DNA of 64,000 nucleotides from Oopsacas minuta. Lineage: Eukaryota > Animalia > Porifera. The stretch lies in contig JAKMXF010000312.1 in NCBI GenBank assembly GCA_024704765.1, forward strand, positions 124,001 through 188,000. Direction: 5' to 3'. Below, piece by piece: positions 5,315 through 52,296 of the stretch (position 1 is the first letter of the stretch; each line of letters starts with the position of its first letter). The notes under the pieces are model-generated. The model had not been told where the DNA came from. It was given only the letters and a program-made list of their open reading frames with translations, and did no database searches. The position numbers and the translations under genes were made by a program.

Positions 5315-5524
5315 TATATATATTACAGTAAACACCGTGGATCACAGTATAGCTAAAAATAGAATCTTACCTAAGGGTAAATTCCTAAATACACATATGA
5401 TCTCATAATCTAATTAGAGCATATACTACTATCTAATAGAATCTAACCAAGTATATACCTATTAGGATAATATAAATAAATCAGGACTGCTGTAATTCAT
5501 TATATTTGTCCAACATCTCAAATT

Positions 5525-6115: not shown

Positions 6116-6339
6116 TTCTATTGGCTGACAAGTCGAGAGACAGCTGTTTTTCTTTTTAGTGTGTTTAGGCCTATATATCTAACCTATAAATACCTCTTTT
6201 GAGTTTATTTTCATTTTTCCCACTATTCATAAGATGTGTTTGTATCTCTTATTCACATTACAGTAACTGGAAAACATGTAAAGGGGTAAAATCTTCCCAT
6301 AATATTTCGTCTTGCTTGTCGCTCGATAAATTACTTACA

Positions 6340-6480
6340 ATCACCCCCCGCTATCCCAAACACGAACATAGAATACCCGCTTATATCGAAGTGTGAGATT
6401 ATACAAATATGGCCCCAAACCGTCAGAGTAAAATATTTTTCATCGGTTATAACGAAGGAATTATCACGGTCCCTTGAGCT
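6340..6480. mobile_element. Degenerate copy of the window's pogo-like MITE family
   Basis: Shares ATACCCGCTTATATCGAAGTGTGA...TACAAATATGG...CCCAAACCGTC...TTATCACGGTCCCTTGAGCT with copies near 23.1, 26.7, 28.5, 53.0 and 62.9 kb. Confidence 0.7.
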
Positions 6481-6753
6481 TTGGTAAACAGGACCGTATT
6501 TAGATTGGTCCTGATTTATTGGAATATTTTACTTGCATATTAAACTATTGACTTCATCCCAAGAAACGGAAAAGACATGCTAGTTTGAGGGAACGCCGAA
6601 TTAACATTTGTAGAACTGTTTTTGTTTTGTCAGATTTCACCTCTGGCTCCCTTCGCTTATTCGATACCCTAGATTGTATTCTGATTACTAATTATTCATT
6701 CTATCGTACGTTCGACTAGCTAAACGATCCGCACGATAACAGATCTACGTACG

Positions 6754-7792: not shown

Positions 7793-8061
7793 ATGAGAGC
7801 TTTTATACTTTCTCAGTAGTTAGGGATATAGGCCTACTGAACGCTCATACCTGATTGGCTTATGATACCCAATCAATTGTTTAGTTTAGTTATAGCTGAT
7901 ATTCTGTTCAGTTTCGGAATTACGCTTTATTACACGTAATTAATACTTGGACAATTTATGATATATAGTTCCTTATTGAACTAATTAATTATTTGGTGGC
8001 AGTTCTAAGGGGAAGGGGTAAAGTCCTCTGGGTTATATAACTATAAATCTATATTTAGACT

Positions 8062-10209: not shown

Positions 10210-10594
10210 TTTCACACCTAGCAAGCATTATTTATTGAAATATTTGTTGATGTTTATTTGATGATATGACTTTTGAAAAGACCACTTTCAAAAGTGGCAC
10301 ACCAGAATGACACCTAGCAGAATCGTCCACAACTTAATCGTAACCAGAACTATAGATTATGTATATACTTGTTTACTGTCTAGACACCTTTTTGACAATA
10401 ATCATTATTTGTATTTATATATGCTTAAAATCTGATTTTTAATCAAAAATAGCAAATTCTATAAATTCAATATTTCACTGACAATGTTTGTAATTTTATA
10501 ATAATAGCTGTCAGCCACCTAATGAGATAACCTGTGCCATTTGACGACACATTTTATCTTCTTCACATTTACGAGGGTATTCGCATAACAACGA

Positions 10595-13500
10595 ATGTCT
10601 GATGATAGAATTTTGAGTAAGAGGAGTCAGTCGATTCCTACGTCTTACGATAAAATGAAGTCAATAGCTGGATGCTATGATCTGGAAGATACTATAGGTG
10701 ATTATTGTTATTATTGTTTACGGATAGTCAACTCCTGTTATAGCGAAGTCTGAATTGTACAATATGGTTCCTTGAGCTTCTGTATAACAGGAGTTGACCC
10801 CAGCGTTTCCCACAGTATTTTTGGGATTGAGTGGGCCTCTCTCGCTTATACACGTCTACCCTATGCATAGTGCCTTAACGCAGGTAGATATTCTAACCGC
10901 GTCATTCAGCGGCACGTTAATTGACGTGTAAATTGATATACCATCCAAAAGGGGGACAATTTCGCCACATTCCAACGGGCCATGATGCCCGAATCGCAGC
11001 CAAGTGACAAACATATATGCAACCAGTGTTTCCCCAAAGCTAGTCGCATAACCACCTCTAAATAACTTGTACATTCATTGACCAATAGAATATCAGCCTG
11101 TAATACTCTGATAGTTCCAATTAATTCCCTATATCCATAGTCCAATAATACATAATCAGTAATGCATTCTTAACCTCTAGGAGAAGGACATTTTGGTGTA
11201 GTTAAACGCGCCAGACACGTGTTCACAGGTCAGAGAGTAGCAGTTAAGGTTATTGACAAGACTAAGCTGTATAACAGATCTGATGCTAAGGAGGCTAAGG
11301 AACAGCTGGTACAGGAAGTACAGTGTATGAAGCTTGTTAAGCATACTAATGTTGTAACATTATATCAGGTGATTAGCAATATATATATTATGACACTTCC
11401 AAATCTTTCTATAGTAACATTTCATTTTTGGTATCCATAGTCCATAAATTTCCTAAAATTACAAATGCACCTATTCCAATCCTTTTATACTCCCCAGTAA
11501 TCCTATCAACTAATCGAATTAGGTTATAGACACCAACAACAGACTATACCTCATCCTAGAGCTTGGTACAGGCGGTGATCTCTACGATTTTATCCAAAAG
11601 AAGTATCCGCAGGGAATGAAAGAAAAGAAAGACTTAGAGTTCGCTAAGAAGATTTTCCTACAGATTGTGAATGCAATTAAGTATTGCCATGACTTACATA
11701 TTGTACATAGAGATTTGAAGCCAGAAAATATTGTATTTTTCGCTCACGATTTGGTTAAACTCACTGATTTCGGTCTTTCAGCTAACTGTAGGCCTGGACA
11801 GAAGTTGTTGACGTTATGTGGGTCTCTGGAGTATTCGGCTCCTGAGATATTCTTTGGAGAGTCTTACGATGGTCCTGCAGTTGGTAAGTTGTTGTTGTTG
11901 TTGTTGTTGTTTTAGAAACATTTTAATTCAAATTTGGATTGCTGGATCAGAAAATTATGTTACTATTGTCCAACGGTTCCCAACCTGTTCTCCATGGACC
12001 CTTTAGAGGTTCACGGACGACAACAGGGGGACGACTTATTGCCACCTCTTATATCCGACACAATTATCACGCTCTATATTCTATTACTTGTATTTAGATG
12101 TATGGAGTATGGGAGTACTGCTATACATGATGCTAGTAGGAAGATCACCATTTGCTGCTGGTAATGATAATGAAACTCTAATTAATATCATGGATGAGAA
12201 GTACTATACACCTGATTACATACCAGCTGCCTGTAAAAGGTATTTCCAGAGTTATCAAATACAGTAAATGCCGATATAAGAATCATAACTCGATTTACCG
12301 AATCTTTTGTATCTTACTCCATTGAATTTTTACCGGTTATAAGAACATTATGTCCAGTTCCCGAAGATGTTCTTATAACCGCTATATTCCTATAAATGGT
12401 GTGCTTCTAAGTGATACCAATTGGGTTTGACATGTATTTCACACTTCAAATTGGACTTATGAATCACTTGCCAATTGTCCACTTCACACATTTGTGGATT
12501 GACATGTATCCTCTGAATAGTAGGTGTTAAGTATTTACATTCGTGTTTTTGTTTATTTTTCAGATTGTTAAAAAGAATGATAGTCAGGGATGTACACAAT
12601 AGATGCACTGTCTCAGATATTCTAACATCTGATTGGTTAAAAGACGTGCCACTTTCTAAACAGATGCCATTAATAGCTAAAGTCAGAGACTTGTCGAAAG
12701 AGGACAAACTCGTAATTATACAACAGATGGAAGAAGGAAATTTTGGGAGCAAAGACAGCATTCTTAAGTGAGTTATCGTTGCTAGGATAAGACTCCGAAT
12801 AGCATCCATGGTCCAAAATATTTTCCCTGCTCTAATTGCAACTGAAACCAATTAATGCCTTATAGTGAGTGTTGTCACTTGCCTAGTTGTTCATATTGTC
12901 CATTTTCTATAACCAGGATGTTCTTTAACAGCCACTTTTCCCTGTCACAATTATTGACACCTTGATATAATTCTATATTTAGACATTTAGTTGAACATCC
13001 ATACAGCCACTTATCTGCCACATACTACATACTGGCCGAAAAATTCCTGAGAAGAAAGCAGGCATTTAATTCTTCAATTAGAAAGAAGAAAGTTACATAC
13101 CAAGAGTCCGTAACTTCTTCTGGATCTGAAGATGATGTAGAAAGAGTATTGCAAAGGTAAATAAGCGTTGCTAGGATGGAAACTGTAATAAAATTCCCTA
13201 AATATTCACTTAGCTATTATTTGTCGTAATTATTTACTTGTTTCTTTAGAAAAATGGATTTCCCCTCTCCAGCAGGTCAATCAACTCTTCCTACAGTATT
13301 TGAGACTAAGCACGGAGCAGCTGAGACAGGAGTACTAAGAAAGAGGAACCTCGAACTAATACCCACTGTACCACCTACTAGACAGAAGAACACTCCAGAT
13401 GATACATACAGAGACATGTGGGCTAAGCCTGTTAAAGAGGTGTCAATTGTGGAGAGTAACAGCTTTAGATCTCCAACTAAAAGTAGGTTTCAGAGGGACA

Positions 13501-14617: not shown

Positions 14618-15000
14618 TTGAATTATTGGATACTGTATTTATATTAAATGCAAATATGTAGTTTTATATTGTGCCTATTCGTCTCATGGAGGAAAGGTGT
14701 CATGTGACACTTGGATTCTCTGAGCCATCATATTTTAAATCACCATGGTAACAAGAAAAATGTAAAATATCTACTTCGATCACAAATCAAAAATTTATAT
14801 TTTCCTGGACCAGATGTTCCCTCCTGGACACTCCTGGGGGCTTATAGCTCCCCTAGACCCCTTTTCAGGAACGTGTCCCTTCCCCCAAAGTGTTCTTAAC
14901 CACCTGCCATAATGGATACCAGATGGTTACATTGGAATTTCGGTTTTAAGAGATATTGTAATTGTTGATTGTTTGTATATAGTATTTCTAATTAGAATTA

Positions 15001-15788
15001 ATGGGGAGGAGACCAGCAAGGTGTTATCGGTATTGTAAGAACAAACCCTACCCTAAGTCCCGTTACTGCAGAGGGGTACCCGATGCAAAGATCCGTATAT
15101 ACGATATGGGTGCTAAAAAGACCCCTGTAGCCTTATTCCCGTTATGTATCCATCTATTGAGTGATGAATATGAGCAAATAAGTTCTGAAGCTTTAGAAGC
15201 TGCGAGAATTTGTGCTAATAAATACATGGTTAAGCACTGCGGAAAAGATCAGTTCCATTTGAGGATTAGACTACACCCATTCCATGTGTTGAGGATTAAT
15301 AAGATGTTATCATGTGCTGGAGCTGACAGGTAAGTGTTTGTTTGTTTGTTGTTCGCGTACTTTTGATGTATATAGGTGTTAAGATTAATCATATGCCTAA
15401 TCTAGACTGCAGACCGGGATGAGAGGAGCATTTGGTAAACCAATAGGTACAGTAGCCCGCGTGAATATAAGACAGGTCATGATGTCTATAAGAACTAAAC
15501 CAGCATTTGAGAGCAGCGCTATTGAGGCGTTCAGGCGGGCAAAGTTCAAATTTCCTGGTAAGCATTATTGATGGGACCATTTTCATCAAAATATTTTGTT
15601 TGTCACTTTCAGGGCGCCAAAAGATAGTGGTCTCCAACAAGCATGGGTTCACAAAATACACTCCAGAGGAGTACGAAGAAGGAATAAGGACTAGGACCCT
15701 GACCAAGGATGGTGTCAATGTCCAATACCATGGAGAAAAGGGGCCGTTCAAGAACTGGTTGAAACGTATGCACATTCCAGAGAGCTAG
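15001..15788 (+). CDS. RPL10: 60S ribosomal protein L10 (uL16), 3 exons
   Basis: [21 protein letters not shown]...MLSCAGADR|[12 protein letters not shown]; introns ~15330-15402 and ~15559-15611. Confidence 0.98.
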
Positions 15789-15933
15789 ACTGGTTGTTAG
15801 GGATGAATATTAGGAATTAGAGATTATTAGTATTGTGTTAATTAGTTGATTATACTAAAATAGTTACCCAATCAGATTTAAGGGTTTGACTTTAATTTTG
15901 TGTAATATAATTCAAGATATTTATAGAATATTT

Positions 15934-23747
<7,814 letters not shown>

Positions 23748-37316: not shown

Positions 37317-37535
37317 GAGCCACTATTTTATCCGTAGATAGTGCTAATTACATTTTGTATATGAAATATTCTCAGCTAATTAGATTAGCTCTTACAGAAT
37401 TAATCAGAGAAATTCGATATATAAATTTGATTGCCGTTCATGATTACTTTGTGAATATGTATAACAGTTATACATATAGCTAAAATTATAACACCTAGTC
37501 GTATAAATTAATTGGCATTCACAAAATATCACAAA

Positions 37536-38735
37536 ATGGAACAAAATTTGGATGCAAAACTGCAATTGATCGAAGAGACATTCGCAATCTGTCGACAAGA
37601 CATTGACACAAAATGTGACGAATTACACAATGCAATCGAGGTGTTAAGGCAGAACTTAATTATGAAACTGAAACTGGAACTAAAACACGCCCGCGTTAAA
37701 TTGGTAAAACGGCGGAAAAGAGCGGATACCATTAACGAAATTGAGCGCGTTTCTAGCCCGCGGGATTCGTTTCGTATGGAAGTCGAAAGTTTGCTTTTAA
37801 GAGGAAAATCTGATATTCTCGTCGACAAACCGTGTATATTGCAAATAAAATGGAACAAAATTGAATGGCCAAAGTTTAACACCTTAGCAACAATAACAAC
37901 AGAACACGCGCCATATTATAGACTGAAAAATAGGCCAATCAATTCATTCGCTCCTTTCAGTTCAACATTCCTTAACGTTGTACCGGAAAAAATAGCGATT
38001 GACTCTGAAACCAAATACCTCGCAATCACAGATAGCGAGCAAGCTGGTGTACATATTTTCACACCTGATGGACAACAAACACATATCATAAATCACACCT
38101 CAATGAAGGGACCATACGGTGTATTCATTGCAAGAGGGAAGGTTTATGTTACGGACATAAAAACCGATTTTGTGTACATTTTCGAATTTAGTGGGAGACT
38201 ATTGAAAAGGTTCGGGGGTAAGGGATCCACCCCGCACAAATTGGACAATCCTACAGCCATATGTGTCCAATGGGAAGGCGGATTTGAGCATATTTACGTG
38301 TGTGACACCAACAATGATGGTGTTTCGATATTCAACTCAAATGGCGCGTGTTTTCGGCGTTTGGCTTATAAATTATTGAACAAGCCTGTCGACATAAAAA
38401 TCGATAAATCTAATATTTACGTTTTGCATTATGCTGAAAAGTGTGTTTGTGTTTTCGACAAGAAAGGGACTATGATAGATAAAGTTTGTACAAATTATGG
38501 ACCAAGTCCTGTAGGGGATCTTGTAACACCTAAGTGTTTCGATTTAGATGAAGAGGGTAATTTCTATATTTTGGATCAGGCAAGCGATTCAGTCAAGGTG
38601 TTTGATCGTAAAGGAAATTGGGTACATTCTCTTGACAACGCGGGGGAGTTTATGGAATGTGTGAGTGTTACTGTGGCAGCTGGTGATTTGTATATATTGT
38701 CACGTCAAGGTGTGAATGCAGTACATAAATATTAA
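37536..38735 (+). CDS. Coiled-coil + NHL-repeat beta-propeller protein (TRIM-NHL-like, no RING/B-box), intronless
   Basis: N-terminal heptads, then NHL repeats (KGPYGVFIARGKVYVTD, LDNPTAICV...IYVCDTNNDGVSIF, LNKPVDIKID, PKCFDLDEEGNFYILD). Confidence 0.85.
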   Translation: MEQNLDAKLQLIEETFAICRQDIDTKCDELHNAIEVLRQNLIMKLKLELKHARVKLVKRRKRADTINEIERVSSPRDSFRMEVESLLLRGKSDILVDKPCILQIKWNKIEWPKFNTLATITTEHAPYYRLKNRPINSFAPFSSTFLNVVPEKIAIDSETKYLAITDSEQAGVHIFTPDGQQTHIINHTSMKGPYGVFIARGKVYVTDIKTDFVYIFEFSGRLLKRFGGKGSTPHKLDNPTAICVQWEGGFEHIYVCDTNNDGVSIFNSNGACFRRLAYKLLNKPVDIKIDKSNIYVLHYAEKCVCVFDKKGTMIDKVCTNYGPSPVGDLVTPKCFDLDEEGNFYILDQASDSVKVFDRKGNWVHSLDNAGEFMECVSVTVAAGDLYILSRQGVNAVHKY

Positions 38736-38851
38736 TATAATGTAAATATTCGTTGGAGCAATTATGTGTTGTTGTATGTGATTATATCTTATAATATGTT
38801 GTAACATATCAATAGTCTGACTGGTCGACTGGGCTAGGTAAAAGCCAAATT

Positions 38852-39073
38852 CTAGTTTGTTTACTAGTTTGTTTGCTATTTTGTTTACTAGTTTGTTTAC
38901 TAGTTTGTTTGCTATTTTGTTTACTAGTTTGTTTACTAGTTTGTTTGCTATTTTGTTTACTAGTTTGTTTACTAGTTTGTTTGCTATTTTGTTTACTAGT
39001 TTGTTTGCTATTTTGTTTGCTATTTTGTTTGCTATTTTGTTTGCTATTTTGTTTGCTATTTTGTTTACTAGTT
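38852..39073. repeat. Compound 12-bp-unit tandem repeat (GTTTGTTTACTA / GTTTGTTTGCTA / TTTTGTTTGCTA)
   Basis: Seen directly. Confidence 0.9.
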
Positions 39074-39111
39074 ATTAATGATAGTAAACAAACAATTTCA
39101 AAATTGTTAAT

Positions 39112-40738
39112 AAATTGTATAGAAAGAATAATTATTAAAAATAACCCATAACATTGCTGTAATATTCAGAATTATATTGTTTGAGTTAAGATTCTTATTT
39201 GCTTTATATAACTTCTACAAAACTTTCATAAAACTAAACTACAGGTAAGTTGAGCTTTATGCTCTGGGAGTCTTCCGGCACCCTTATCCTATAAAAATGA
39301 GTTACTAGTTCTGATTTTAGTTCTGTTATGGTGGTAGTGATTAGGTTACTGATAGCTGGCATCATGTTTCAGCTACAACATACACTCTGCATCTTATTTC
39401 GTCATCGCATGAATATTCTCATTATTTCAACTACGTGGTATAAACTGGCTGGAGTACATTATATCCATTCAGAGAAGATATGTTAATATTAGTACATTCT
39501 AGAGATAATTATTGTAGTAACCATGGATAGCGTATTTTTGTCAAGCTTTACAGATAACTAACCATTATTAAAAGATATGGTAAATACATTTTGATGTCAT
39601 CTCAAACTATTGTGAGGCAATCACAATTATGGGTGCTTGTAAGTGCTCAAGGCCATTTAATAAGAGGTAATCGAGTACAGTAAACATTGGAATTAACGAC
39701 TCATTTTGCTTGCCCAGAATCTCCCAACATTATTTGGCACAAACTATACCTCGGGTATAACGACACATTGAATTTAGCGACATATTTTCTGTCTGCCCCA
39801 TGCAAATCCCATCGGATATCATTACTTTTGGGCTGTCTGTACTGTGGACTTCAGAAAAGTGTACGAATTAATGTATTATTAAGGTATAATATTGGTTTAA
39901 TTATAAACCAATAAAACCTCCCCTGTTTTGAATCAACACCTAACTTCTTGCAAAAATGCATATTTAAAGCTATTGTACGAACAATGGAATGTTAAAATTT
40001 TATCTTCATGGATTCGAGCGGAGTTGGCAAAAGGAAGCGTTTTTCTTTTGCTAAAAATACGAGATTTTCAAGGAGCTTGATACAGATAATACAACATAGT
40101 ATAACATGAATAAATTTGGATGTCATCAGGTGTATTATGCATATTTAAAGCTTCCTCGCATTTAGTGATAGATCGGATATAACGACCTTTTTAGCCTGCC
40201 CAAACGAGTGTCGTTAAATCGATTCGTCCCCATCAGAGCGAAACCCATTAAGCCAATTATTTGACGGTTTAATAAATAAATGATTTAAATCCAATGTTTA
40301 CTGTATAAGGAAATACTTCCAAGCTATAAGAAGTAAGGGGCTGCCAGATAACGTGTCCACAAAGTTCTTGCCATTACAGTGAAGTATCACAAAACGGAAA
40401 ATATTAACAATCATATAACTCTGTAAAAACGGATAGAAAACAATAACCCCCCACCCATGGTATCAGGAGACCACAGTTAAGTGTACTGGGTAAAGACAAA
40501 ATGCAACCTAATCCATAACGTAGCAACTACAGAAAAAAACATAAGAAACTCATTTTTATAGGATAAGGGTGCCGGAAGACTCCCAGAGCATAAAGCTCAA
40601 CTTACCTGTAGTTTAGTTTTATGAAAGTTCTGTAGAAGTTATATAAAGCAAATAAGAATCTTAACTCAAACAATATAATTCTGAATATTACAGCAATGTT
40701 ATGGGTTATTTTTAATAATTATTCTTTCTATACAATTT
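39112..40738. repeat. 192-bp near-perfect inverted repeat pair (39112-39303 and 40547-40738) enclosing 1243 bp
   Basis: Arms match at 191/192 by manual comparison; no TSD found at the outer edges. Confidence 0.92.
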
Positions 40739-40848
40739 CTATTGAGAAGCTCATTGGAGCATTCAATGCATTTTATCCGTTGTAATTAGCTTCATTATTA
40801 TTGAAGATATATATAATACTTCTCTTGGAATAATTAGTTCCATATGTA

Positions 40849-43221
40849 ATGGTAGAAACTGACACCTCAAAACATGGACAAGTTAGGGAGCTAATACTAG
40901 CCTCTGTCTTAGACGCGGTGAAACAATGTCAGAGACATTTCGGAGCTGGCCAGGGGGTCGCGACAGAAACGGACCATAGGGTAACGAATCTTTTAAATAG
41001 TTTTGATAGTTGTCTGTCTCATGGGGTCAGACGTAAGGCGGGGAAACTCAAACAAGCGTTCGGACGCCGTGAAGAATCTGGTTCTTTCTGGCCCGTAGTC
41101 AAAGAAGTGTTGAGCGAATTCCAATTCCAAAGATTGAAAAGTGTCGTTCAAGCTGAACGAAGTATTGACTTCTCTAAAGAAAATATGGGCATGGTGTGGC
41201 TTAAGGTGGCACTGAATGAGCGTAACCTTCAAACTATTCTAACAACTTTACTCTCTGATAGACCACTTGTACTTAGATACTACGATGAACATGCTTTCAT
41301 TCGAGACGAAGAGAAAGCGTCTGTTATACCCACGAGTGCTGCCGGGCTTGGATCTGTCATTTTTGCGCTCAATGTGTTTCCAGATACCAGAGTAGGGACC
41401 CCACCTCGTAGTGACGAGAGGAGACAGTCTCCCACCCTACAGTACTCAATGGTACATACCATGAACGGAAAATCTAGCCCACTACTAACAAATAGTGTCG
41501 TTGTGGCTGATAGACAGCTGACTTACAAAACTGACCCACTTATACAGAGTGAGAAAATCTCTACTTACTCTACCCCTAGCTCTTCTGTTTCACAACCTTC
41601 AAATTTCTTACAGGGGGACTTCACACCTGAACCGGTCATAAATGTACCGGTACAGGAAATAGTTCGGAGAGACAGCAAACGTAGAAAGGCTAAAATTAGA
41701 TTTGGAGACACAAGCGAGATTGTACAGCGTCATAAACATAAGATAGATGAATGGAGTGGTTCAATAACTGCCGACACAGATTTGACACCTACTAGTCAAA
41801 CTATTCAGGATACTTTTCAAGGTGTGAATAATGTGTCGCATTCAAATTCAGACAGATATGGGAATGGACTCTTGGAAACGTTTCCAGAAGAATCTAATCC
41901 TACTCCTGATCTATCCGACAGATCTTCAGACTCAGAGGATCAAACAGGATCGATTCCAAAGTTTGTTGGAGAACTCAGCTCTTCTCCTTACAAAATATCT
42001 CACCTCAGTTCTATTTATACTAACCACAAACTGGAAGGCCTACTATCAACCTCACCAGGCAATCAATTGCACGCTTCTACACAGGAAGCTCTCGATGCGA
42101 CAGCTGTTGCTCTAGGGGCCTCTACGGTTGGAAAACGACCGAATTTTCAGGACACAACAAGATTGGCGCCGAGCCAGTCCCTTTCTGAAATGTCACGGGG
42201 AGACCTTGAGGCGCTAATGGTGACTGTTAGTAAACAAAATGAAAAGATAGGTGACAAGAATAAACAACAACAAATCGAACTAGATCGTGAGCAGAGGATA
42301 AATGGAATGCTACGAGATGAAATAGAATTAGAAAAATCTGAAATGAAGCGAAGAGAAGAGGAGTTATCCATGAAGGTATCATCAATCTCCCGTGAGAACG
42401 ATCTCCTTAAGGGTCAACTTAAGAAGTACGTGGGTATAGTACAATCTATGGAGATCAAAGAGGCCATGGGTGTCTCCCGCGGGGTCTCTCTTAACACCCC
42501 ACAGGGTGTCAAAGAATATGCCAACCAGGACAACGAGAAGATACTACAGCTCTCTGATATGTATGGCGAATTAATGGAATTGAACGAAAGGTTGCACAAA
42601 GATTTGATTCTCAAAAACAGAGTAATATTATGTATGCAAGACACAATGTTATCGTTAGGCCTACAATTGCCTACTTTTAATTGCCCGCGCGCGGTAGAAC
42701 AAGACAGCAACGAGTTTATGGCAGAAGGAATTCTAAAACGCGAAATTGTGAAGATATGGATACCATCTGCTTTTCTAAGAGAAGAATCTTTTCATGTTTA
42801 TCAAATATATATCCGTATCCATAACGACGAGTGGAATGTCTATCGTCGCTACACTGAATTCCACGAATTCCACCACCAATTACGCAAAAAGGTCCCAACT
42901 ATTGATAAATTCAATTTTCCTCCTAAGAAGAATATCGGAAGGAAGGACGCGAAACTGGTGGAGGAAAGGCGACAGCGGCTGCAGAGCTATTTGCGTTACA
43001 TGGTGCATCTATTGAGTAACTCTACCTCATTATCAAAACCAGCTATATTCACCGAGAATCTTACAAAACAGAAGTTTCTAGAATTATTACCGTTTTTCTC
43101 AGATTTCAGTGACGCTACTGGGTCCAGAAGTTCATCCCCTGCTGTCGGTCTAGGTGCTGGAGGTAGAAGAAACTCCGCTCAGTTACCACCGCCCAAGTCA
43201 CCGACGTATAAAGGTCTTTGA
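40849..43221 (+). CDS. SNX29: Sorting nexin-29 (RUN, coiled coil, PX), intronless
   Basis: RUN (CLSHG...FWPVVKE...WLKVALNER...YYDEHAFIRDEE), coiled coil, PX (IWIPSAF...HVYQIYIRI...WNVYRRYTEF...FPPKK...ERRQRLQSYL). Confidence 0.9.
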   Translation: MVETDTSKHGQVRELILASVLDAVKQCQRHFGAGQGVATETDHRVTNLLNSFDSCLSHGVRRKAGKLKQAFGRREESGSFWPVVKEVLSEFQFQRLKSVVQAERSIDFSKENMGMVWLKVALNERNLQTILTTLLSDRPLVLRYYDEHAFIRDEEKASVIPTSAAGLGSVIFALNVFPDTRVGTPPRSDERRQSPTLQYSMVHTMNGKSSPLLTNSVVVADRQLTYKTDPLIQSEKISTYSTPSSSVSQPSNFLQGDFTPEPVINVPVQEIVRRDSKRRKAKIRFGDTSEIVQRHKHKIDEWSGSITADTDLTPTSQTIQDTFQGVNNVSHSNSDRYGNGLLETFPEESNPTPDLSDRSSDSEDQTGSIPKFVGELSSSPYKISHLSSIYTNHKLEGLLSTSPGNQLHASTQEALDATAVALGASTVGKRPNFQDTTRLAPSQSLSEMSRGDLEALMVTVSKQNEKIGDKNKQQQIELDREQRINGMLRDEIELEKSEMKRREEELSMKVSSISRENDLLKGQLKKYVGIVQSMEIKEAMGVSRGVSLNTPQGVKEYANQDNEKILQLSDMYGELMELNERLHKDLILKNRVILCMQDTMLSLGLQLPTFNCPRAVEQDSNEFMAEGILKREIVKIWIPSAFLREESFHVYQIYIRIHNDEWNVYRRYTEFHEFHHQLRKKVPTIDKFNFPPKKNIGRKDAKLVEERRQRLQSYLRYMVHLLSNSTSLSKPAIFTENLTKQKFLELLPFFSDFSDATGSRSSSPAVGLGAGGRRNSAQLPPPKSPTYKGL

Positions 43222-43565: not shown

Positions 43566-45422
43566 TTACATAAAATTATCCAAGCAAAGTAGTTTCGCTA
43601 ATTTGTTAAGTTTCATTTCTATTTTTTGAATATTTCCAGCTAAGTTTGAGATTATTTTCGAAGAATCTTCCTTGGGATATTGTATTGTATCTAAATATGC
43701 TTCTATATCTGTGTGTATTTGAGGACATATTATTGATGTCTTTGTTGTTGTTTGTTGATATTCAAAAGGTGTTATGTTGTTAGTCCCGATTTCACACTTC
43801 AAACTGTAACTGAAACTTGCTAATTGGTTCAGTTCTCCTTTTGCAGTTTCACCTTTCGCTGTTTCTAATTCAGATCGCAATTTATGCTTGAGATTTTCGT
43901 TTTTTCGCAATATTTGCATAAATTCCTGTCTCTTGATTACGTAACCATGTTCCGATTTGGAAATCTGTTCTTGTTTCAGTTCCAATTGGGTCACTATCCA
44001 TTCAACCTCTTTAGATACTCTGGACAACATTTTCTCAATTGTCTCAATATCGTTTGTCTGCATTCTATTGGTGTCTAACTGTTGTTTAGATAAATATTTA
44101 CTCGCTTCATAGCAACCAGAAAGTATGCTAAAATTATTCACCTTTTCTAAAATTAGTAACAAATCATTTCCCTCAAAGTTTGCTTCGAGTTTTACGAGAA
44201 TTTTCATTAAATTCTCGTAATTTATTCTATATTTAGAATAAGCGCTAATATTCCCGCTCAATTCTCTTATTGCATAATCCAACTCGATACTTGATTGGTT
44301 CAATCTATGCATCTCATATTCTGCATTTTTCTGTGTTTCCATGGTAACGTCCTTTGTTGCAGTTTGTATTTTCATAATACTCTCTTTTATGATACTTTTC
44401 ACACCTTTTCCATATGGATATTTATTTTGCATCTCTTCAATAACATTCCATAAATTTTCTGTAACTACCCTGGATTGTTCTGATACTAAATTTAGTAACA
44501 AAGATACTTTCCTAATTTCTAATTTTGTCATTTTAAAGTCTGCACACAATTGTTGAATATTTTCATTCACTTTTTGGAAAGCTGAATTCTGCTTGGTATA
44601 CTTCATTAAAGTTGTTTCAAAGGAAATACTTTTTGAGAAGGAATCTTGCGGTTCTTCTTGCTTGAAAATGAAACAGAATGGCGGGAAACCGATTTGTAGA
44701 TTCCTCTTAACACCATACGGTGTCTCGTTGCCCGCCAAAAGTGTCACACTAGCCTTCACTGTATCATGAAATGTGTCTAGTTCCTCTTTACTGAATGATT
44801 TTTCGAAATAATCCGAGCTATAATCATAGCCAGAATATTCACTCATAAAAATAACCTTTTCAGAAATCAGATTCTTGGAAAGACAAACTAAAGTCGCCCA
44901 AAGTTTCCTCACAAGCACGCTATCTTCTTTTCTTCTGGTTAATTTCATTTCTTTTGAGGTGTCGGAAGGTGGCACAATTGTTCGTGACACTAAAAAAGGC
45001 CCAACAACGACACTAATACCATTCATCTTCAGTTCTGCCAACCAATCAGCTAATCGCTTTACCATCATATGAGCCGTATTAGCGAAAAATATTGAAAATC
45101 GAATTTTTGCAAATTTATATTTGGCGCCTATTTGATATAAGGTGTCATTAATTTGATCTTGCAATAGCGCATTTGGAAAATTGTTGATCCAAATTCTGTA
45201 TTCAATAATACAGTTTGTTGTTGTTTGTATATATTTGTTGATATTTTGTATTTGATCAATAATTCGCATGAAACGATCGTCAATGGATGAATCATGCGTA
45301 AAATGATCAGTAGCTATTTCCTTCTCATAATCTTTAGTTATTAGTATAATATGACACCAAACAAACGTGTTAGTTCCATTTATATCCCAGAATCCAATCC
45401 TCTCTTCTTCTGAATATTCCAT
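43566..45422 (-). CDS. Catalytically dead AID/APOBEC-like deaminase-fold domain fused to ~390-aa helical/coiled-coil tail
   Basis: The N-terminal ~200 aa align with the neighbouring deaminases: EYSEEERIGFW~DYSNEELHQFW; RIWINNFP~GIWITNSPC; IRFSIFFAN~VRLILFFSS; LADWLAELKMNGISVVVGPFLVS~LKDWILRLVQMKICIIIGPIIVS. HAE and both Cys are absent. Confidence 0.8.
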   Translation of the reverse strand: MEYSEEERIGFWDINGTNTFVWCHIILITKDYEKEIATDHFTHDSSIDDRFMRIIDQIQNINKYIQTTTNCIIEYRIWINNFPNALLQDQINDTLYQIGAKYKFAKIRFSIFFANTAHMMVKRLADWLAELKMNGISVVVGPFLVSRTIVPPSDTSKEMKLTRRKEDSVLVRKLWATLVCLSKNLISEKVIFMSEYSGYDYSSDYFEKSFSKEELDTFHDTVKASVTLLAGNETPYGVKRNLQIGFPPFCFIFKQEEPQDSFSKSISFETTLMKYTKQNSAFQKVNENIQQLCADFKMTKLEIRKVSLLLNLVSEQSRVVTENLWNVIEEMQNKYPYGKGVKSIIKESIMKIQTATKDVTMETQKNAEYEMHRLNQSSIELDYAIRELSGNISAYSKYRINYENLMKILVKLEANFEGNDLLLILEKVNNFSILSGCYEASKYLSKQQLDTNRMQTNDIETIEKMLSRVSKEVEWIVTQLELKQEQISKSEHGYVIKRQEFMQILRKNENLKHKLRSELETAKGETAKGELNQLASFSYSLKCEIGTNNITPFEYQQTTTKTSIICPQIHTDIEAYLDTIQYPKEDSSKIISNLAGNIQKIEMKLNKLAKLLCLDNFM

Positions 45423-45610
45423 TGTTGTGTGAGTATACACATACTCTTTGAGATAGATATGGAACTTTAGTATTTATTTCTATGGAGAGGGCTTTATGGT
45501 TACTGACTTTGTATGGCAGAAGCTGTATGTATATTAGCTCGTGTTGTATATATTGGATATATGCAGTTGTTCCTAGAAAAGTTATTCTTACATTTTACGG
45601 GATATTCCAT

Positions 45611-46522
45611 ATGCATTTTATCCGCAATTTCACACCTTTAGAAATTGACCGATTTCGGATAAATGATCCAACACAAACTGTTTGTGGTATTACTGCTTAT
45701 ACTGGAGTAAAGCGTAGTATGGTTACATTTGCGAACTGCCACTTGGTTGGTGGAGCAAAACATGCCGAAGTTGTGGCTTTTGAGACGATCAAATCCGCTA
45801 TTTTTCGGAGGTTACTAAGAGAATGGAAATCCAGGAAATATATCTTCCTCGAATTTTGTATTTGTCTTAACTACAGCCCTTGTTCCGCTTGCAGAGACGA
45901 GATCTTTAAATATATTGAAATGTTCCAGGAATGCGTCCCTCGCATTTCAATCCGTATTACGCTATTTTTCTCCTTTTTTAATCGTGAACTTGGTTCACGT
46001 GTAAACCTGAAAAATTGGATTATTAAATTACTAAATATTAAAGTTACTGTTCTAACGGGCCCAATCATTTTGAGTAAAGTACACCGGAAACTATCAGCAT
46101 ATGAGAAGAATCGAGATGGACAAGTAGAAGTTAAGTTCATAAGATTCATAAATTTGCTTGACGCAGGAATTTCTGTGTCAAACCTCACTGGAAACGGGCG
46201 GGAAATCAAATTGAAAGTTCTTTCTAGAGACTCTCTAATTATTTCTATTTATCAAAAAGATCATCCTTACTATTCTCAATTAATTCCGAGATATTCTTCT
46301 TTAATAGAACGCGAACATAACAATCCAAGAATTGCTATCAAAACCCCGAAAATTCTTGATTATATTAAGGAAGGTTCTAAACCTGACACCCCTAAAATAA
46401 AGACAAAACTGAGAATTAGAATCAGAAGAAACCAAATGTCCTCAAAGCGATTTAGGAAGTTTAAGCAGCGAAACGCAAGAAATATGAGATTTACAATCAA
46501 GTCATTCTTTCCCTACAAATAA
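45611..46522 (+). CDS. AID/APOBEC-like zinc-dependent deaminase, copy 1 (likely start MHFIR), long basic C-tail
   Basis: QTVC...KHAEVVAFE...LNYSPCSAC...ITLFFSFF...NWIIKL...GPIILS. Confidence 0.85.
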   Translation: MHFIRNFTPLEIDRFRINDPTQTVCGITAYTGVKRSMVTFANCHLVGGAKHAEVVAFETIKSAIFRRLLREWKSRKYIFLEFCICLNYSPCSACRDEIFKYIEMFQECVPRISIRITLFFSFFNRELGSRVNLKNWIIKLLNIKVTVLTGPIILSKVHRKLSAYEKNRDGQVEVKFIRFINLLDAGISVSNLTGNGREIKLKVLSRDSLIISIYQKDHPYYSQLIPRYSSLIEREHNNPRIAIKTPKILDYIKEGSKPDTPKIKTKLRIRIRRNQMSSKRFRKFKQRNARNMRFTIKSFFPYK

Positions 46523-46714
46523 ACTTCCAAAGTATTTCCCTAATTTGTTGTTGTTTACTTTGAAAGTTATATTTATATTTGCTCTTATTTATTCACACGT
46601 ATTTCTGTCGATTCATATTATTTACGATGATTTACTTATCTGATATCTTTGATATTTATGTTATTCACACTTTGCATTAATCTCATAAATAGCTATATTT
46701 TTCAACCTTAATAG

Positions 46715-47467
46715 ATGCTACCAAATAAAATCACTAAATTCGAAAATATTGAAAAGGAACAGTTTTGGCTATGCAACAAACCAAACACTTTATGTAGAAT
46801 AGTGGTTTGTGTAAGAAGCAGTGCTAATAAGGACGGCTCTGTTGTATTTGAACGGTATTCAAAACCTTTTGACCAACTGCATGCTGAATTAAGTACACTT
46901 AGATTTGTAGCAGATAATCTATATACATATTTAGAAGATGTCTCGATCGACAATTCTACAGTTTTAGATGTTATTATTCGGATTAATAATTCCCCCTGCT
47001 CGGAGTGTCAAGATCCACTCATAGGCCTTTTGCTTGAAATCAAGAGCATGTTAGCTGAAGCTCATTTCCGATTTATTTTGTTTTTCTCGAATTTCTATGA
47101 GAAGTGTGAATTAGGCGTTAGGAATTTTTGCAATTGGATGCAAATATTAGTTGCTAATGATATTATTGTTATTGTCTGTCCGCTTTTTGTCGATACAATG
47201 GTTCCAAAACCATTCAAAGCTGATGAAATGATTCTTCCGAATTATTTAGGTCAGAGTTGTATTGACGATTTTAGGCAAATTCTGTTCTGTATTGACTCTC
47301 AAAAGTATCCATTTCCCGTTTTCACTAGTCATGAATTCTTTCGAAAAAGCTACCCAGTTGACAGGTCACTATTTGGTTGGGAAAATCCTCATTTTATCTC
47401 TTTATGCCCCAACGGTGCACCTCATCACCTTTCTAAACTACAGATTGAGTCGGAATTCTTTGAGTAA
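46715..47467 (+). CDS. AID/APOBEC-like deaminase, copy 2
   Basis: QFW...NTLC...LHAELSTL...INNSPCSEC...FILFFSNFY...CPLFVDTMVPKP. Confidence 0.88.
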   Translation: MLPNKITKFENIEKEQFWLCNKPNTLCRIVVCVRSSANKDGSVVFERYSKPFDQLHAELSTLRFVADNLYTYLEDVSIDNSTVLDVIIRINNSPCSECQDPLIGLLLEIKSMLAEAHFRFILFFSNFYEKCELGVRNFCNWMQILVANDIIVIVCPLFVDTMVPKPFKADEMILPNYLGQSCIDDFRQILFCIDSQKYPFPVFTSHEFFRKSYPVDRSLFGWENPHFISLCPNGAPHHLSKLQIESEFFE

Positions 47468-47860
47468 TTTGATACTTTAAACATTTCTAACTCTAAGTTT
47501 CACTTGTTAATTACTTTCTAAACTTTTCTAATTTGTAACTCTTTTCATCTTCATATTATTTACCTATTATAATTGATCTCAAAATGATATAGATTATATT
47601 ATTCCTCTTTTGTTTGGAAGTAAATACATTTTGTGTAGAGTGGTACTCGCATAAATCGAAGCTCAAGGTCTTCTTGGTTATGCAGGTGTCGGTTATGCAA
47701 TATTGCTCCACTAAAATATGCCTATACAGATATTCATAGGTGTTTGGAAATCCATTTTCTGAATGCTATTAATGAGTTAATGAAGCATAACGAATGGGCG
47801 AAGCTATATTAGTTTGCATATGAATATGGATGTAGCCATTATATTGTATTCAGATAATAT

Positions 47861-48667
47861 ATGTTTGCAAATATTTCTACTTTTTCCAGTTTTCAGAGAA
47901 ATCAGTTTTGGCATTCTTATACTGCGAAACAACAACCCACAACAATATGTAGAATATCTACTATTTTAAAGATAAGAAATCACAACAAAATGTTAGTTAC
48001 ATGCTCAACAACAGCAAGTGTCAAACGTCATGCTGAAGTAGGAGGTACAAATGTTGTTAGTAGACTATTGCTCTCTGACAAATCGTTACATAAGTATTTA
48101 GATAGTGTCATAGACATTAACATACTTCTCAACAACAGCCCGTGCCGTGAATGTCAACTTCATCTTTTGAAAAAAATAATAGCAGTAAAGGAAAACTTAT
48201 CGAATATTCAGTTCCGATTAATTCTATATTTCACTAATTTATACTGTGGGAAAGGTGCCAGAATTGATGAAGCTTTAGATCGGCTAAGTAGATGGATTAT
48301 GAAACTAGTGAATGAAAGTTTTGTTGTTATTATTTGTCCAATTATTGTTTCTACAATGGTTCCAAAACCAAAAAGATTACCCAACAAACTAGGAACAGGG
48401 ATTGAGAAATATGATAAAAGTTGTATCAGAGACTTCAGGAAACTTTTGAAGAAAATTGAATTGATAAATTCAACTCTCAAAGTTTTTACAAGCAACAGAC
48501 TATTTCGTAAACAAATACCAATTAAAATGAGTTTGTTTACTTGGCGTAAACCACAGTTTATTTCTTTTTACCCTGATGATAAAGAAAATCTTTCCTATTT
48601 CGTGCTAAAAACTGCAACTCCAATTGTACGCAAAAAACCACGCAAAAGATTAACCCTCAATTCATAG
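47861..48667 (+). CDS. AID/APOBEC-like deaminase, copy 3 (C-terminal KKPRKR)
   Basis: QFW...TTIC...RHAEVGG...LNNSPCREC...LILYFTNLY...CPIIVSTMVPKP. Confidence 0.88.
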   Translation: MFANISTFSSFQRNQFWHSYTAKQQPTTICRISTILKIRNHNKMLVTCSTTASVKRHAEVGGTNVVSRLLLSDKSLHKYLDSVIDINILLNNSPCRECQLHLLKKIIAVKENLSNIQFRLILYFTNLYCGKGARIDEALDRLSRWIMKLVNESFVVIICPIIVSTMVPKPKRLPNKLGTGIEKYDKSCIRDFRKLLKKIELINSTLKVFTSNRLFRKQIPIKMSLFTWRKPQFISFYPDDKENLSYFVLKTATPIVRKKPRKRLTLNS

Positions 48668-49132
48668 GTACTATAAGCGATCCTCTCTTAAATGTGTTAG
48701 ATCGCACTGCTATATTTCTCATAATTGTTGCTCTTATAATTTCTATAATATTTCCTAAAAATTATTCATGCTCTAACCTAGTGATAATAACTGATAATTG
48801 GAATGCAAAGTTGGCATTTTTGGGACATTTTCACCTTTTTGTATATTTGATTATATTATTTCTATTACATTATTCATATTCTAACGCAGCGGTTCCATGA
48901 ACCCCTTGAGAGTCCACAGGATCAATTGCAGCCTATAGGAGGGGTGTCAGAATGAGAAAGGTCTACTCAAACGTAGTGATAATAACTGTGTACTGTAATA
49001 TACGAATTCACAAAGTACAAATATGTTTATGTACTTGTAGACCCCCTCCCGTAGGCTCCAATAGATCCTGTGTACCCTGCTGTCGTCCTTGACCCCGGTC
49101 TTGTTAAAGGAACCGCTAGATTTTAGCAATAA

Positions 49133-49942
49133 ATGGGATCTTTTCGGAAAAAGAAGGAAATTGTCAAATTTACTCAACGAGAGAAGGGATTTTTTTGGTT
49201 AGCATATAAGCCACCATTGACCGTGTGTAGAGCAGTTATATGCTTGAAGACCAGTTCTGGGGGACAATATCCCAAACCAGCAAGTTCTATATCTGGTAAC
49301 TCTCATGCAGAGGTTCGTGCACTTGAAAAACTTGGACCCAGATTGCCAAAATATCTCAAGAAAAATTATGATCCTTCCGATGATTCTACTGTAATTGAAC
49401 TTGTACTTAGACTTAATAACAGTCCATGTCATGACCATTGTCAAGCTTGTATTACATATTGGATTAAAGATATTCAAGAGTTATTACCTGGGGTACCATT
49501 CCGTTTCATTTTGTTGTTCTCAAATTTCTATCTTGAGTCCCAATCTCAATGTCCCATCAATACAGTCTTAGACTACCAAGCTAGATGGATCAAAGAATTA
49601 GTAGAAATGGGAGTTATTGTTACCCTATGCCCAATTGTTGTCTCTCAAATGGTTCCCCGACCTTTTAATACAACCGTCGATTCTAGATATTTTAGAAAAA
49701 ATGATCCAATCCTGTTGCAAAATTTCAATCTGCTTTTGAAGAAATTTTCTCCAAAAAAGAAAATCAAAACCTTTAGGAGCAAACATTTCAAACAAAGTGT
49801 AAACAATATCAATCCGCACGATTTCACTAATATACCAGCATTTTTCTCCGTTTATCCCGCATCTGAAATGAATTCTACACTCTGCCAATTACCCTCAGAA
49901 TATTCTATCCCGAAAATAGCCAAAAAGTCTGCTCGGTTCTGA
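49133..49942 (+). CDS. AID/APOBEC-like deaminase, copy 4 (PCHDHCQAC variant)
   Basis: FFW...LTVC...SHAEVRALE...LNNSPCHDHCQAC...FILLFSNFY...CPIVVSQMVPRP. Confidence 0.88.
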   Translation: MGSFRKKKEIVKFTQREKGFFWLAYKPPLTVCRAVICLKTSSGGQYPKPASSISGNSHAEVRALEKLGPRLPKYLKKNYDPSDDSTVIELVLRLNNSPCHDHCQACITYWIKDIQELLPGVPFRFILLFSNFYLESQSQCPINTVLDYQARWIKELVEMGVIVTLCPIVVSQMVPRPFNTTVDSRYFRKNDPILLQNFNLLLKKFSPKKKIKTFRSKHFKQSVNNINPHDFTNIPAFFSVYPASEMNSTLCQLPSEYSIPKIAKKSARF

Positions 49943-50313
49943 ACAGCTCTTAATGCCATCTAACAATTTGAATTTTATTCTATCAAACGTATTTTAGAAT
50001 TTTTTCCTTATTTATTCACTTGTTGTGTCTATCTGTATTTCATGCTCTAGCCTAGTGATAACAACTGATAATTGTAATGCAAAGCCGCAAATACAAGTAA
50101 ATTCGCTGTAAGCACTTTTTGTGCCATCTACCATCTACCACGAATTATCCACAATTAATAGTATGCGCTAATACGCTTATAAATGCTAAGATTATTTCTA
50201 ACACATTTATTGCTCTAAAATCTTTTTGGATTGATTTATCAGGAATATTTTCTAATCAGGTTTGCGAGTATTTGTTTATTTGTTTGTTTATGATTGATTT
50301 ACATATTGTACAG

Positions 50314-51288
50314 ATGTATCCTACACAACAACATACAAACAAACAAACAAATATACAACAAACACCAGATACTGTTTGGAAGTTCTCAAATAAAGATTAC
50401 AGTAACGAAGAGCTCCACCAATTTTGGGGAACTTCGAAATCAAGACTAACAACTCACTGTTGGGTATCAGTTAGTTATAGAAGTGAAAAGGGAGTTGTTA
50501 TATCAGAAAGTGGCACAAGTATTGTCCCACTTAAGTGTACAAAAACTAAAAGAATAATACACGCGGAGTCCATGGCTTTGAGAGATATTGCGTCTGAGAA
50601 TATTCCTAGAAACTTGCAGGAAAATTCAGTATTAGATTTAGGAATTTGGATAACAAATAGTCCTTGTAATGACTGTCGTGAATTAATTTCTGAGAGATTG
50701 AAATCTTTTCAGATTTCATTTCCAACCGTGAGATTAATCTTATTCTTCTCCAGCTTATATTGTGGCCGCGACACATCAACTAACGACACTTTGTGCCACT
50801 TAAAAGACTGGATTTTGCGTTTGGTCCAAATGAAAATATGTATAATCATTGGTCCTATAATCGTATCTAAGCATGTACGTGTTCCCCAGAAAATCTGTGA
50901 GAGCAAAAAATATAAACTTAAGGTTAGAAAGGAAAGAGACCTTCGTTCGCTCAAGCATTTCCGAAAACTTAAACGGCTACTGCTATCCTCGCGGTCTCAG
51001 ATATACAATTTGAAATCGAATCATAGAACATTTTCTAACTGTCCCCTGGATGAAAATGTGCTATGTGAAATCGCCCAAAATGATTTATTATATTTTTCTG
51101 TTTTCCCTCCAGACAAGTCTCATCTCGCAGAGCTGACTCCCAATAATATTGGTTTGTTCCTATACATGACTTATTTGCTTGTTTGTAGGTTTACTGCTTG
51201 CCTTGGAGCGGATTCTCAGAAAGACAAAAAGAGAAACAAACAAACAACAACGGTCAGGAAAAATATATATGAGAATGTTAATATCTAG
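50314..51288 (+). CDS. AID/APOBEC-like deaminase, copy 5
   Basis: QFW...TTHC...IHAESMALR...ITNSPCNDC...LILFFSSLY...GPIIVS. Probable intron 50260-50313 just before the ATG, and a possible 37-nt intron 51152-51188 that would move the stop to 51292. Confidence 0.85.
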   Translation: MYPTQQHTNKQTNIQQTPDTVWKFSNKDYSNEELHQFWGTSKSRLTTHCWVSVSYRSEKGVVISESGTSIVPLKCTKTKRIIHAESMALRDIASENIPRNLQENSVLDLGIWITNSPCNDCRELISERLKSFQISFPTVRLILFFSSLYCGRDTSTNDTLCHLKDWILRLVQMKICIIIGPIIVSKHVRVPQKICESKKYKLKVRKERDLRSLKHFRKLKRLLLSSRSQIYNLKSNHRTFSNCPLDENVLCEIAQNDLLYFSVFPPDKSHLAELTPNNIGLFLYMTYLLVCRFTACLGADSQKDKKRNKQTTTVRKNIYENVNI

Positions 51289-51914
51289 CTGAGCTATAGT
51301 TGTTCTCGGTCTTGTGTATTATTTTATAATACTGGCATCATAAAGGACACTTTATCAAATACAAACAAATATAAACAAATACAAACAGATAAACAAAGTT
51401 CTTTCCGTCAGTATTGTAAATAATAATACTTCAAAACCGAGACACACGGCTTAGCTGATATACCATTATTATCATTATTATTATTGTATACCTTGTGTAT
51501 ATATTGTATAAATCTGATCAAATGCAAACAAATGCAAACATTGAAACTCCAAACCTTCAGGGGAACAGGGTCCCATTCAACTCACCCTCCTCCTGCTATT
51601 TATACTCTAGCCATCAGCAAGCTAGAGGTAGCAACCAATCAAATGGTTGCTATTTAGATCAGTTCCACTGAGTCATGCTAGACAGCTGTCTTTCAGTATG
51701 AACTCAGGTTAGGGAGTAGTTAGGCCTAATTGGGGACTGATTGCTGACACTATTCTTGTTAGAAATCTACATCAATGCGAGCCTTTGGCTCAACGCTTTG
51801 TACTGAACTTGGCGCATTGACCGCCACTTTGAGTATTATGATATACATTGTAAGATCAATCCCTTTGAAGCAGTTTTCAAAATTGCATGCCGTAAACCCT
51901 TTCCTTGACCACGG

Positions 51915-51990
51915 ACAAACAAACAAACAAACAAACAAACAAACAAACAAACAAACAAACAAACAAACAAACAAACAAACAGACAAACAA
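51915..51990. repeat. (AAAC)n microsatellite
   Basis: Seen directly; the same repeat class fills many introns in the window. Confidence 0.95.
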
Positions 51991-52296
51991 CAATAGGGAT
52001 TAAATAATATAGATTTTTTGTATTTTGCAGTGTTTATACATGTTTATTGTAGGGGAACAGATTAACTTTCCAGTTATTCGTAACCACAACTTCTCCAATT
52101 AGGTAGGGAGACTAACCCCTGTATTGAGATGCATAAGGCCTCTTCCTGTGTTTATATATGTATAACACAGATGTATTTTGCATTCCATTAACACCTTTTG
52201 TTTCTATGTATTTGTTTGTTATTATTGTTTTCTACAAATAATTTCTATATACACATATCTTGTAGACAAACAGAACAGCCTTTTGTATATTTTATA

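Follow-up and report, generated by a model that had tools for sequence, protein, structure and literature searches.

The gene described here, hereafter the dead gene, lies on the minus strand of a 64,000-nucleotide stretch of the Oopsacas minuta (Porifera) genome (assembly GCA_024704765.1, contig JAKMXF010000312.1, forward-strand positions 124,001 to 188,000; hereafter the window, from whose first letter all feature coordinates are counted). It encodes a protein that begins with a catalytically dead AID/APOBEC-like deaminase (AAD) domain and continues into an extension without relatives. Taken as a whole, the data leave very little doubt about what this gene is. It arose from the local array of active AADs as an inverted copy at the array edge, and its nearest clade is that of the distal array member (the copy-5 type). 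It lost the catalytic glutamate and all the zinc ligands before the seven sampled species diverged, and gained an orphan extension of ~430 aa. A burst of change was followed by purifying selection, whereas the sequence and copy number of its active paralogues continue to turn over. The gene is real, present in a single copy, apparently free of introns, and confined to one group of related compact, animal-like genomes. With its catalytic centre lost and an unrelated, predicted helical tail gained, the protein probably serves as a non-enzymatic partner of a defence-type deaminase family or is an offshoot of it. Mutators of the AID/APOBEC type are central to vertebrate immunity, and to our knowledge their invertebrate relatives are barely characterized.

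The gene, its parts, and the adjacent intergenic region are located as follows:

43566..45422, minus strand: complete, single-exon coding sequence of the pseudo-deaminase/helical-tail protein, 618 aa (ATG at 45422, stop at 43566-43568; six full-length orthologues)
44868..45422, minus strand: dead domain with predicted AID/APOBEC fold, residues 1-185 (hhalign, AlphaFold2, Foldseek, VIA)
45273..45281, minus strand: equivalent of H-A-E, here D-D-R (D48-D49-R50; alignments, hhalign, translation)
45162..45176, minus strand: equivalent of P-C-x-x-C, here P-N-A-L-L (P83-L87; alignments, translation)
44583..44867, minus strand: conserved linker, residues 186-280 (invariant FPPFC.IFK ... D.FSK ... LMKY)
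43569..44582, minus strand: orphan tail, predicted alpha-helical, residues 281-618 (DSSP of a low-confidence AlphaFold2 model; heptad and period analysis)
45423..45610, no strand: 188-bp intergenic region separating the dead gene from deaminase copy 1, its head-to-head neighbor (intergenic alignment across genomes)

We compared the window locus with six loci from related genomes (L001, L002, L003, L005, L006, and L007), for a total of seven genomes. The first-pass annotation of the window had described an intact open reading frame (ORF) that begins with a paralogue of the neighboring deaminases in which all zinc and catalytic residues are lost, and the analyses agreed with each of these points. 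The minus-strand ORF of 618 aa opens with the ATG at 45422 and closes with the stop codon at 43566-43568. Over the first ~185 aa, both BLASTP and profile-profile comparison matched the protein to the neighboring deaminases. By BLASTP, the dead N-terminus has 25% identity to copy 2 (E 4e-11) and matches copy 5 with E 2e-5, an orthologous pair of the same two reaching E 3e-10. The hhalign comparison of the dead-only profile (seven domains) with the active-only profile (38 array ORFs) gave a probability of 98.7% and E 2.5e-16 over 180 columns. Furthermore, in a database profile search with the dead protein, the N-terminus matched six deaminases of ~300 aa. In the alignment, the dead domain shares only 15-22% identity with the active array members. 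None of the deaminase Pfam models matched any of the seven orthologous dead N-termini, even at E ≤ 10, and ordinary domain annotation (Pfam) thereby overlooks the dead domain entirely.

The loss of the active site is complete: HAE has become DDR and PCxxC has become PNALL, so that neither the catalytic Glu nor any of the three zinc ligands is left. Across the orthologues, at the H-A-E position the Glu is absent from 7/7 sequences and the His from 6/7, while the P-C-x(2-4)-C position reads PNALL in the window and PHAII or PNAxx in the orthologues, with both Cys absent from 7/7. The active array ORFs of the seven genomes show no variation at H, A, E, or either Cys (38/38).

That the N-terminus adopts a deaminase fold, as the paralogy claim implied, was borne out by the predicted structure. 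The AlphaFold2 model of residues 1-200, computed on an alignment of 51 sequences (7 dead domains, 38 array ORFs, and 6 database matches), had a predicted local distance difference test score (pLDDT) of 84.9 and a predicted template modeling score of 0.81. When this model was searched against the PDB with Foldseek, the top 50 matches were all APOBEC3A/B/C/F/G/H, AID, or APOBEC2 (E ~2e-6, probability 1.00), and the top matches in AFDB were likewise all AID/APOBEC. VIA-align returned Z values of 12-12.8 over ~157 residues spanning model residues 1-180. The model contains the five-stranded sheet and the interleaved helices, including the C-terminal one, that define the AAD fold. The dead domain is thus predicted to keep the APOBEC fold although its active site is lost.

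The six full-length orthologues (615-627 aa) are 53-66% identical to the window protein at 100% coverage and are collinear with it throughout. We estimated the ratio of non-synonymous to synonymous substitution rates (dN/dS) with the Nei-Gojobori method at unsaturated distances (dS about 0.5-1.0). The ratio was 0.11-0.17 for the whole dead gene, 0.13-0.21 for the dead domain alone, and 0.09-0.25 for the linker plus tail. It was 0.22-0.69, mostly 0.4-0.6, for orthologous pairs of active array members from the same species, and 0.05-0.07 for the housekeeping neighbors (RUN-PX and desaturase). These values indicate purifying selection on the dead gene in the orthologues and contradict neutral evolution. 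Haplotype differences were read from four sequencing runs of one sample; the contigs of these runs extend through intergenic DNA at even depth and contain haplotype polymorphisms, so the runs behave as DNA. The differences listed for the dead gene, which are indicative only, include at least 8 non-synonymous and at least 5 synonymous changes and no stop codons; for the array, the listed non-synonymous and synonymous changes were at least 7 and at least 2 in copy 1, and at least 9 and at least 2 in copy 2. Diversifying or relaxed selection on the array would fit the strong skew toward amino-acid changes in copies 1 and 2.

Beyond the dead domain, the first-pass annotation had proposed a heptad-rich helix of ~390 aa. 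A predicted helical tail enriched in heptads stood, but the extent did not: residues 186-280 are predicted non-helical and only three segments are cleanly heptad-periodic. The first of these regions (95 aa) is a linker conserved among the orthologues, with FPPFC.IFK invariant, predicted non-helical and without heptad periodicity. After it, helices are predicted in the low-confidence model at residues 281-334, 341-397, 459-485, 492-522, 527-545, 570-581, and 587-611. The hydropathy period, averaged over the orthologues, was 3.50 in 281-334 and 459-485, ~3.4 in 587-611, and 3.65 in 341-397, and in segment 281-334 the a/d positions were 81% hydrophobic. Heptad enrichment exceeded that of all 100 shuffles, with 40% of residues scoring ≥0.6 versus 9 ± 9% (maximum 35%). 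The tail is therefore best described as a predicted helical region with three coiled-coil-like segments, not as 390 aa of continuous heptads. The full-length AlphaFold2 model served for secondary structure only and not for fold search.

No relatives of the tail were found among 1.84 billion representative proteins in an exhaustive hidden Markov model profile search, which returned the protein's own cluster, one orthologue fragment, and the six deaminases matching the N-terminus. Searches of the tail by PDB profile, Pfam, and ESM Atlas features and structure gave only noise, the Pfam matches to FliJ, SPAM, and Myosin_tail being sub-threshold. Nothing above noise emerged from an internal-repeat check of the tail or from its comparison with the coiled coil of the neighboring RUN-PX protein. 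A sub-threshold AGO_N match (E 0.003) was dropped, being present in 1/7 orthologues only. The profile search found no match outside the clade, and the whole family is confined to ENA assemblies of this clade.

As regards the origin of the gene, a maximum likelihood tree of 51 domains placed all seven dead ones in a single clade with 100/100 support. Its stem measures 2.44 substitutions per site and its tips 0.07-0.21; the active tips range from 0.06 to 1.6 and are mostly longer. The bipartition joining the dead clade to the copy-5 clade had 97/91 support, subject to possible long-branch effects, and the two types share an N-terminal (N/E)Y(S/T)xEE...W motif. The copy-5 type is itself slow (dN/dS 0.17; 44-51% identity to the window copy across species groups). 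It is the distal-most array member, kept wherever the array end is visible, including in L002. At the C-terminus it has a short hydrophobic segment (GLF...CLLVYLFV) resembling a membrane anchor in sequence.

The array and the genes around it are listed below. In the window, the order is RUN-PX, the dead gene, five tandem plus-strand ORFs (45611-51288), and G6PD.

40849..43221, plus strand: RUN-PX gene (ORF listing and Pfam)
45611..46522, plus strand: deaminase copy 1, the head-to-head partner, with HAE and PCSAC present (ORF, Pfam, alignment)
46715..47467, plus strand: deaminase copy 2 (ORF, Pfam, BLASTP)
47861..48667, plus strand: deaminase copy 3 (ORF, Pfam)
49133..49942, plus strand: deaminase copy 4 (without Pfam match; aligns with the array)
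50290..51288, plus strand: deaminase copy 5, distal array member with hydrophobic C-terminal tail, start codon uncertain (Pfam SNAD4/NAD1/APOBEC_N above cut-off; tree)
Copy-5-type deaminases across genomes: window 50290-51288 (plus strand), L001 467-1360, L002 3388-4224, L007 1478-2374

H-A-E and P-C-x(2-4)-C are present in each of the five tandem ORFs. Four of the five match the Pfam families SNAD4, NAD1, APOBEC_N, and APOBEC3, copy 5 above the cut-off and copies 1-3 below it, and orthologous array members in the related genomes carry Inv-AAD (PF18785) matches. The order RUN-PX, dead gene, array is common to all the full-length loci, with G6PD beyond the array; in L003, RUN-PX is broken by an inverted duplication. 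This duplication (~7800-12000 and 14640-18840) contains two copies of the dead gene (1838/1848 nt identical) together with the first array members and flanks PX gene fragments; it could be a real, recent palindrome disrupting RUN-PX or the result of mis-joined haplotypes.

The dead gene and copy 1 stand head to head, and the distance of ~190 bp between their starts given by the first-pass annotation agrees with the 188 bp that we obtained taking the copy 1 ATG at 45611. We chose this ATG on the basis of the N-termini of the orthologous partners, which it matches; the longer ORF starts at 45482 and would leave a gap of 59 bp. A deaminase with HAE and C..C lies start to start with the dead gene at 188-216 bp in 6/7 genomes (192-216 bp in L001, L003, L005, L006, and L007). 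Divergent start codons less than 1 kb apart are thus conserved across species, the arrangement of a bidirectional gene pair.

In six loci, L002 among them, the 10-mer AAACCACATT is conserved in the intergenic region, 49-62 bp upstream of the dead gene's start codon (intergenic alignment; around 9939-9961). With one mismatch allowed, it recurs upstream of at least six further array deaminases in sister species, at a distance of 111-198 bp and always antisense to the array deaminase genes and in the same relative orientation. Of its 31 matches, 15 fall in the ~7% of the sequence within 300 bp upstream of these genes, although not all of them are independent, as some occupy orthologous positions and L003 is duplicated. 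The reverse complement, AATGTGGTTT, contains TGTGGT, which we take to be the RUNX core site and treat as a lead only. The presence of this upstream element in the relatives hints at common regulation of the dead gene and the array deaminases.

Among known systems, the dead domain recalls the N-terminal pseudo-catalytic domains of APOBEC3G, APOBEC3F, and APOBEC3B, in that a non-editing deaminase fold stands beside an active one and the predicted structure is similar (Z ~12). In those proteins, the N-terminal domain retains a zinc site (HxE and PCxxC) and sits on the same polypeptide as the active domain, whereas the dead domain is without zinc site, belongs to a separate gene, and is fused to a predicted helical tail. 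ADAT2/ADAT3 is comparable in concept, as it unites an active deaminase with a diverged non-catalytic paralogue that provides binding and targeting; the two slow paralogues here are the dead gene and the copy-5 type. ADAT3, a member of another deaminase clade, still has its zinc ligands (HxV plus PCxxC). The analogy with the APOBEC3G N-terminal domain and ADAT3, drawn before this analysis, is inexact at the zinc ligands, all three of which are substituted here. Since both known proteins keep these ligands, the analogies illustrate a possible way of working and not family membership. At the level of Pfam, the AAD families (Inv-AAD PF18785, SNAD4, NAD1, and APOBEC_N) are matched by the active neighbors and never by the seven dead domains.

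Passages of Krishnan et al. 2018, PNAS (PMC5889660) report that inactive AADs emerged repeatedly (some APOBEC3 domains, Ciona, and a sea urchin), describe tandem AAD arrays that turn over rapidly, and propose that inactive AADs could act as decoys or binders. As in the invertebrate and tunicate cases of those passages, an AAD fold without catalytic residues is found here in a lineage with AAD expansions. Unlike the inactive AADs treated there, the dead copy is single-copy, orthologous in seven genomes, slow, devoid of all four active-site residues, and extended by a 430-aa orphan tail. On sequence grounds, it is a separate, independent inactivation and not the Ciona or sea-urchin case, because the profile search found no match outside the clade's own assemblies. 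A term search of the main text of the same paper gave no mention of the fusion of an inactive AAD to a helical or coiled-coil tail, and our literature searches found no report of such a conserved dead-deaminase/tail fusion. Inactive AAD copies are a recurrent finding, in most cases as sporadic paralogues that may be decaying. In the present case, a fully dead deaminase fold has long been kept as a single-copy, constrained gene with a new helical tail, start to start with a rapidly evolving active array. What a deaminase pseudoenzyme does, be it as regulator, scaffold, or binder, can be asked cleanly of this natural example.

Regarding function, we tentatively favor, with a probability of roughly 0.4, a non-enzymatic, oligomerizing adaptor, regulator, or scaffold that acts with the AAD system and is not an editor. 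The dead deaminase fold would serve as a binding module for an active paralogue, as deaminase domains pair, or for nucleic acid, and the helical tail would multimerize or tether the complex. The most plausible constant partner would be the equally conserved copy-5-type deaminase, not the fast-evolving neighbors. The dead gene and the conserved copy-5 deaminase form a tractable pair for mutator and interaction assays.

Several observations weigh against an adaptor of the AAD system. L002 is without the head-to-head partner and most of the array: the copy-5-type deaminase alone remains there, tblastn found no remnants of other array deaminases, and two tandem 420-aa NHL/beta-propeller-like genes (5377-6639 and 8316-9578) occupy the place of the array, the nearest at 422 bp. 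The branch-specific dN/dS of the L002 dead gene (~0.13, calculated by hand from pairwise values) equals that of the sister species; the dead gene is therefore independent of its immediate neighbors. In L006, the head-to-head partner is frameshifted (8878-9791) into two overlapping ORFs. The element AAACCACATT is absent from the window's own intergenic region. As for the models, the alignment behind that of the N-terminus is dominated by active paralogues and may bias it toward the active fold, and the confidence of the tail model is low (pLDDT 43 in the full-length AlphaFold2 model on a 7-sequence alignment). A low-confidence model from a dead-only alignment showed, however, strands and helices in the same order as the model of residues 1-200. 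The L006 frameshift lies inside the conserved ...VVIISPIIV... region and reflects either a pseudogene or an assembly error.

One rival reading is a neofunctionalized offshoot. In such a case, the protein would have a cellular role unrelated to deaminases (e.g., structural or trafficking), and its position would be a relic of local duplication. We consider this possible, if somewhat unlikely. The constraint on the dead gene is unchanged in L002, where NHL-like genes replaced the array, its tempo is quite unlike that of the array, and its orphan tail is without an immune-type domain. However, 6/7 genomes retain the head-to-head arrangement at ~200 bp, the promoter-proximal motif is common to other array members, and one copy-5-type deaminase is still present in L002.

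Alternatively, the protein could be a stand-alone, non-editing nucleic-acid binder. Its dead fold would capture RNA or single-stranded DNA, whether invading or endogenous, and its tail would multimerize, giving a deamination-independent restriction. The deaminase fold is predicted to be intact, and passages of Krishnan et al. (PMC5889660) propose that inactive AADs bind invasive nucleic acids. However, the canonical pocket has probably collapsed because the zinc site is gone. Furthermore, the net charge of the dead domain is +0 to +5, without excess positive charge, and neither net charge nor isoelectric point discriminates dead from active domains. The beta4-to-alpha4 stretch, which we take to hold the substrate-selecting loop 7 on the basis of APOBEC structures, measures 13 residues in all the dead orthologues versus a median of 19 in the active ones, and the dead orthologues are likewise shorter just ahead of the HAE helix. 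We regard this binder as unlikely.

A more specific version of the adaptor, which we consider decidedly unlikely, would make the dead protein the obligate non-catalytic subunit of a two-component mutator. By analogy with ADAT2/ADAT3, it would form a heterodimer with the copy-5 type, maybe tail-anchored, with its coiled-coil tail assembling the complex or directing it to a target. Interchangeable specificity variants would come from the fast-evolving middle of the array, and a common RUNX-like promoter element would drive the genes in immune-type cells.

It is very unlikely that the protein is a decoy for pathogen-encoded, Vif-like deaminase inhibitors, or an integrated-decoy sensor guarding the active enzymes. 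Passages of Krishnan et al. (PMC5889660) suggest decoy roles for inactive AADs in general, and the dead gene adjoins a fast-evolving, copy-number-variable array of the kind typical of arms-race loci. A decoy, however, should resemble and track its fast-evolving models, whereas the dead domain is slow, with a stem of 2.4 substitutions per site and 15-22% identity to them, and this slow evolution weakens the decoy-sensor idea of the first-pass annotation. The protein is also without signaling or NLR-type domains: none among NB-ARC/NACHT, LRR, or other signaling Pfam domains was found in the dead protein or in the array genes. The likeness to NLR sensor/executor pairs, also suggested there, accordingly holds for the head-to-head position and is positional only.

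Lastly, a decaying pseudogene or a chance ORF extension would account for the loss of all catalytic residues and of any Pfam match, but we rejected it on the conservation data, given seven intact, collinear orthologues of 615-627 codons, dN/dS of 0.11-0.17 at dS of 0.5-1.0 or more, and no stop codons in the alternative haplotypes seen.

More generally, the window is a compact, intron-poor, animal-like region with a GC content of ~37%, and its Pfam gene types include Forkhead, G6PD, RUN-PX, NHL, and TIR-type. The Rfam scan of the window returned zero matches, and the bacterial promoter and terminator scan showed no enrichment, bacterial models being irrelevant for a eukaryote. An NHL-like relative of the two L002 genes sits on the other side of RUN-PX in all the species (37512-38735 in the window). 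Between this gene and RUN-PX, a MatE transporter gene is present in L001, L002, and L005; no such ORF was seen in the window (38736-40848), L006, or L007. Simple tandem repeats at window positions 38873-39151 and 51759-51996 translate as LLVC/CLFV or TNKQ runs and generate spurious ORFs on both strands.

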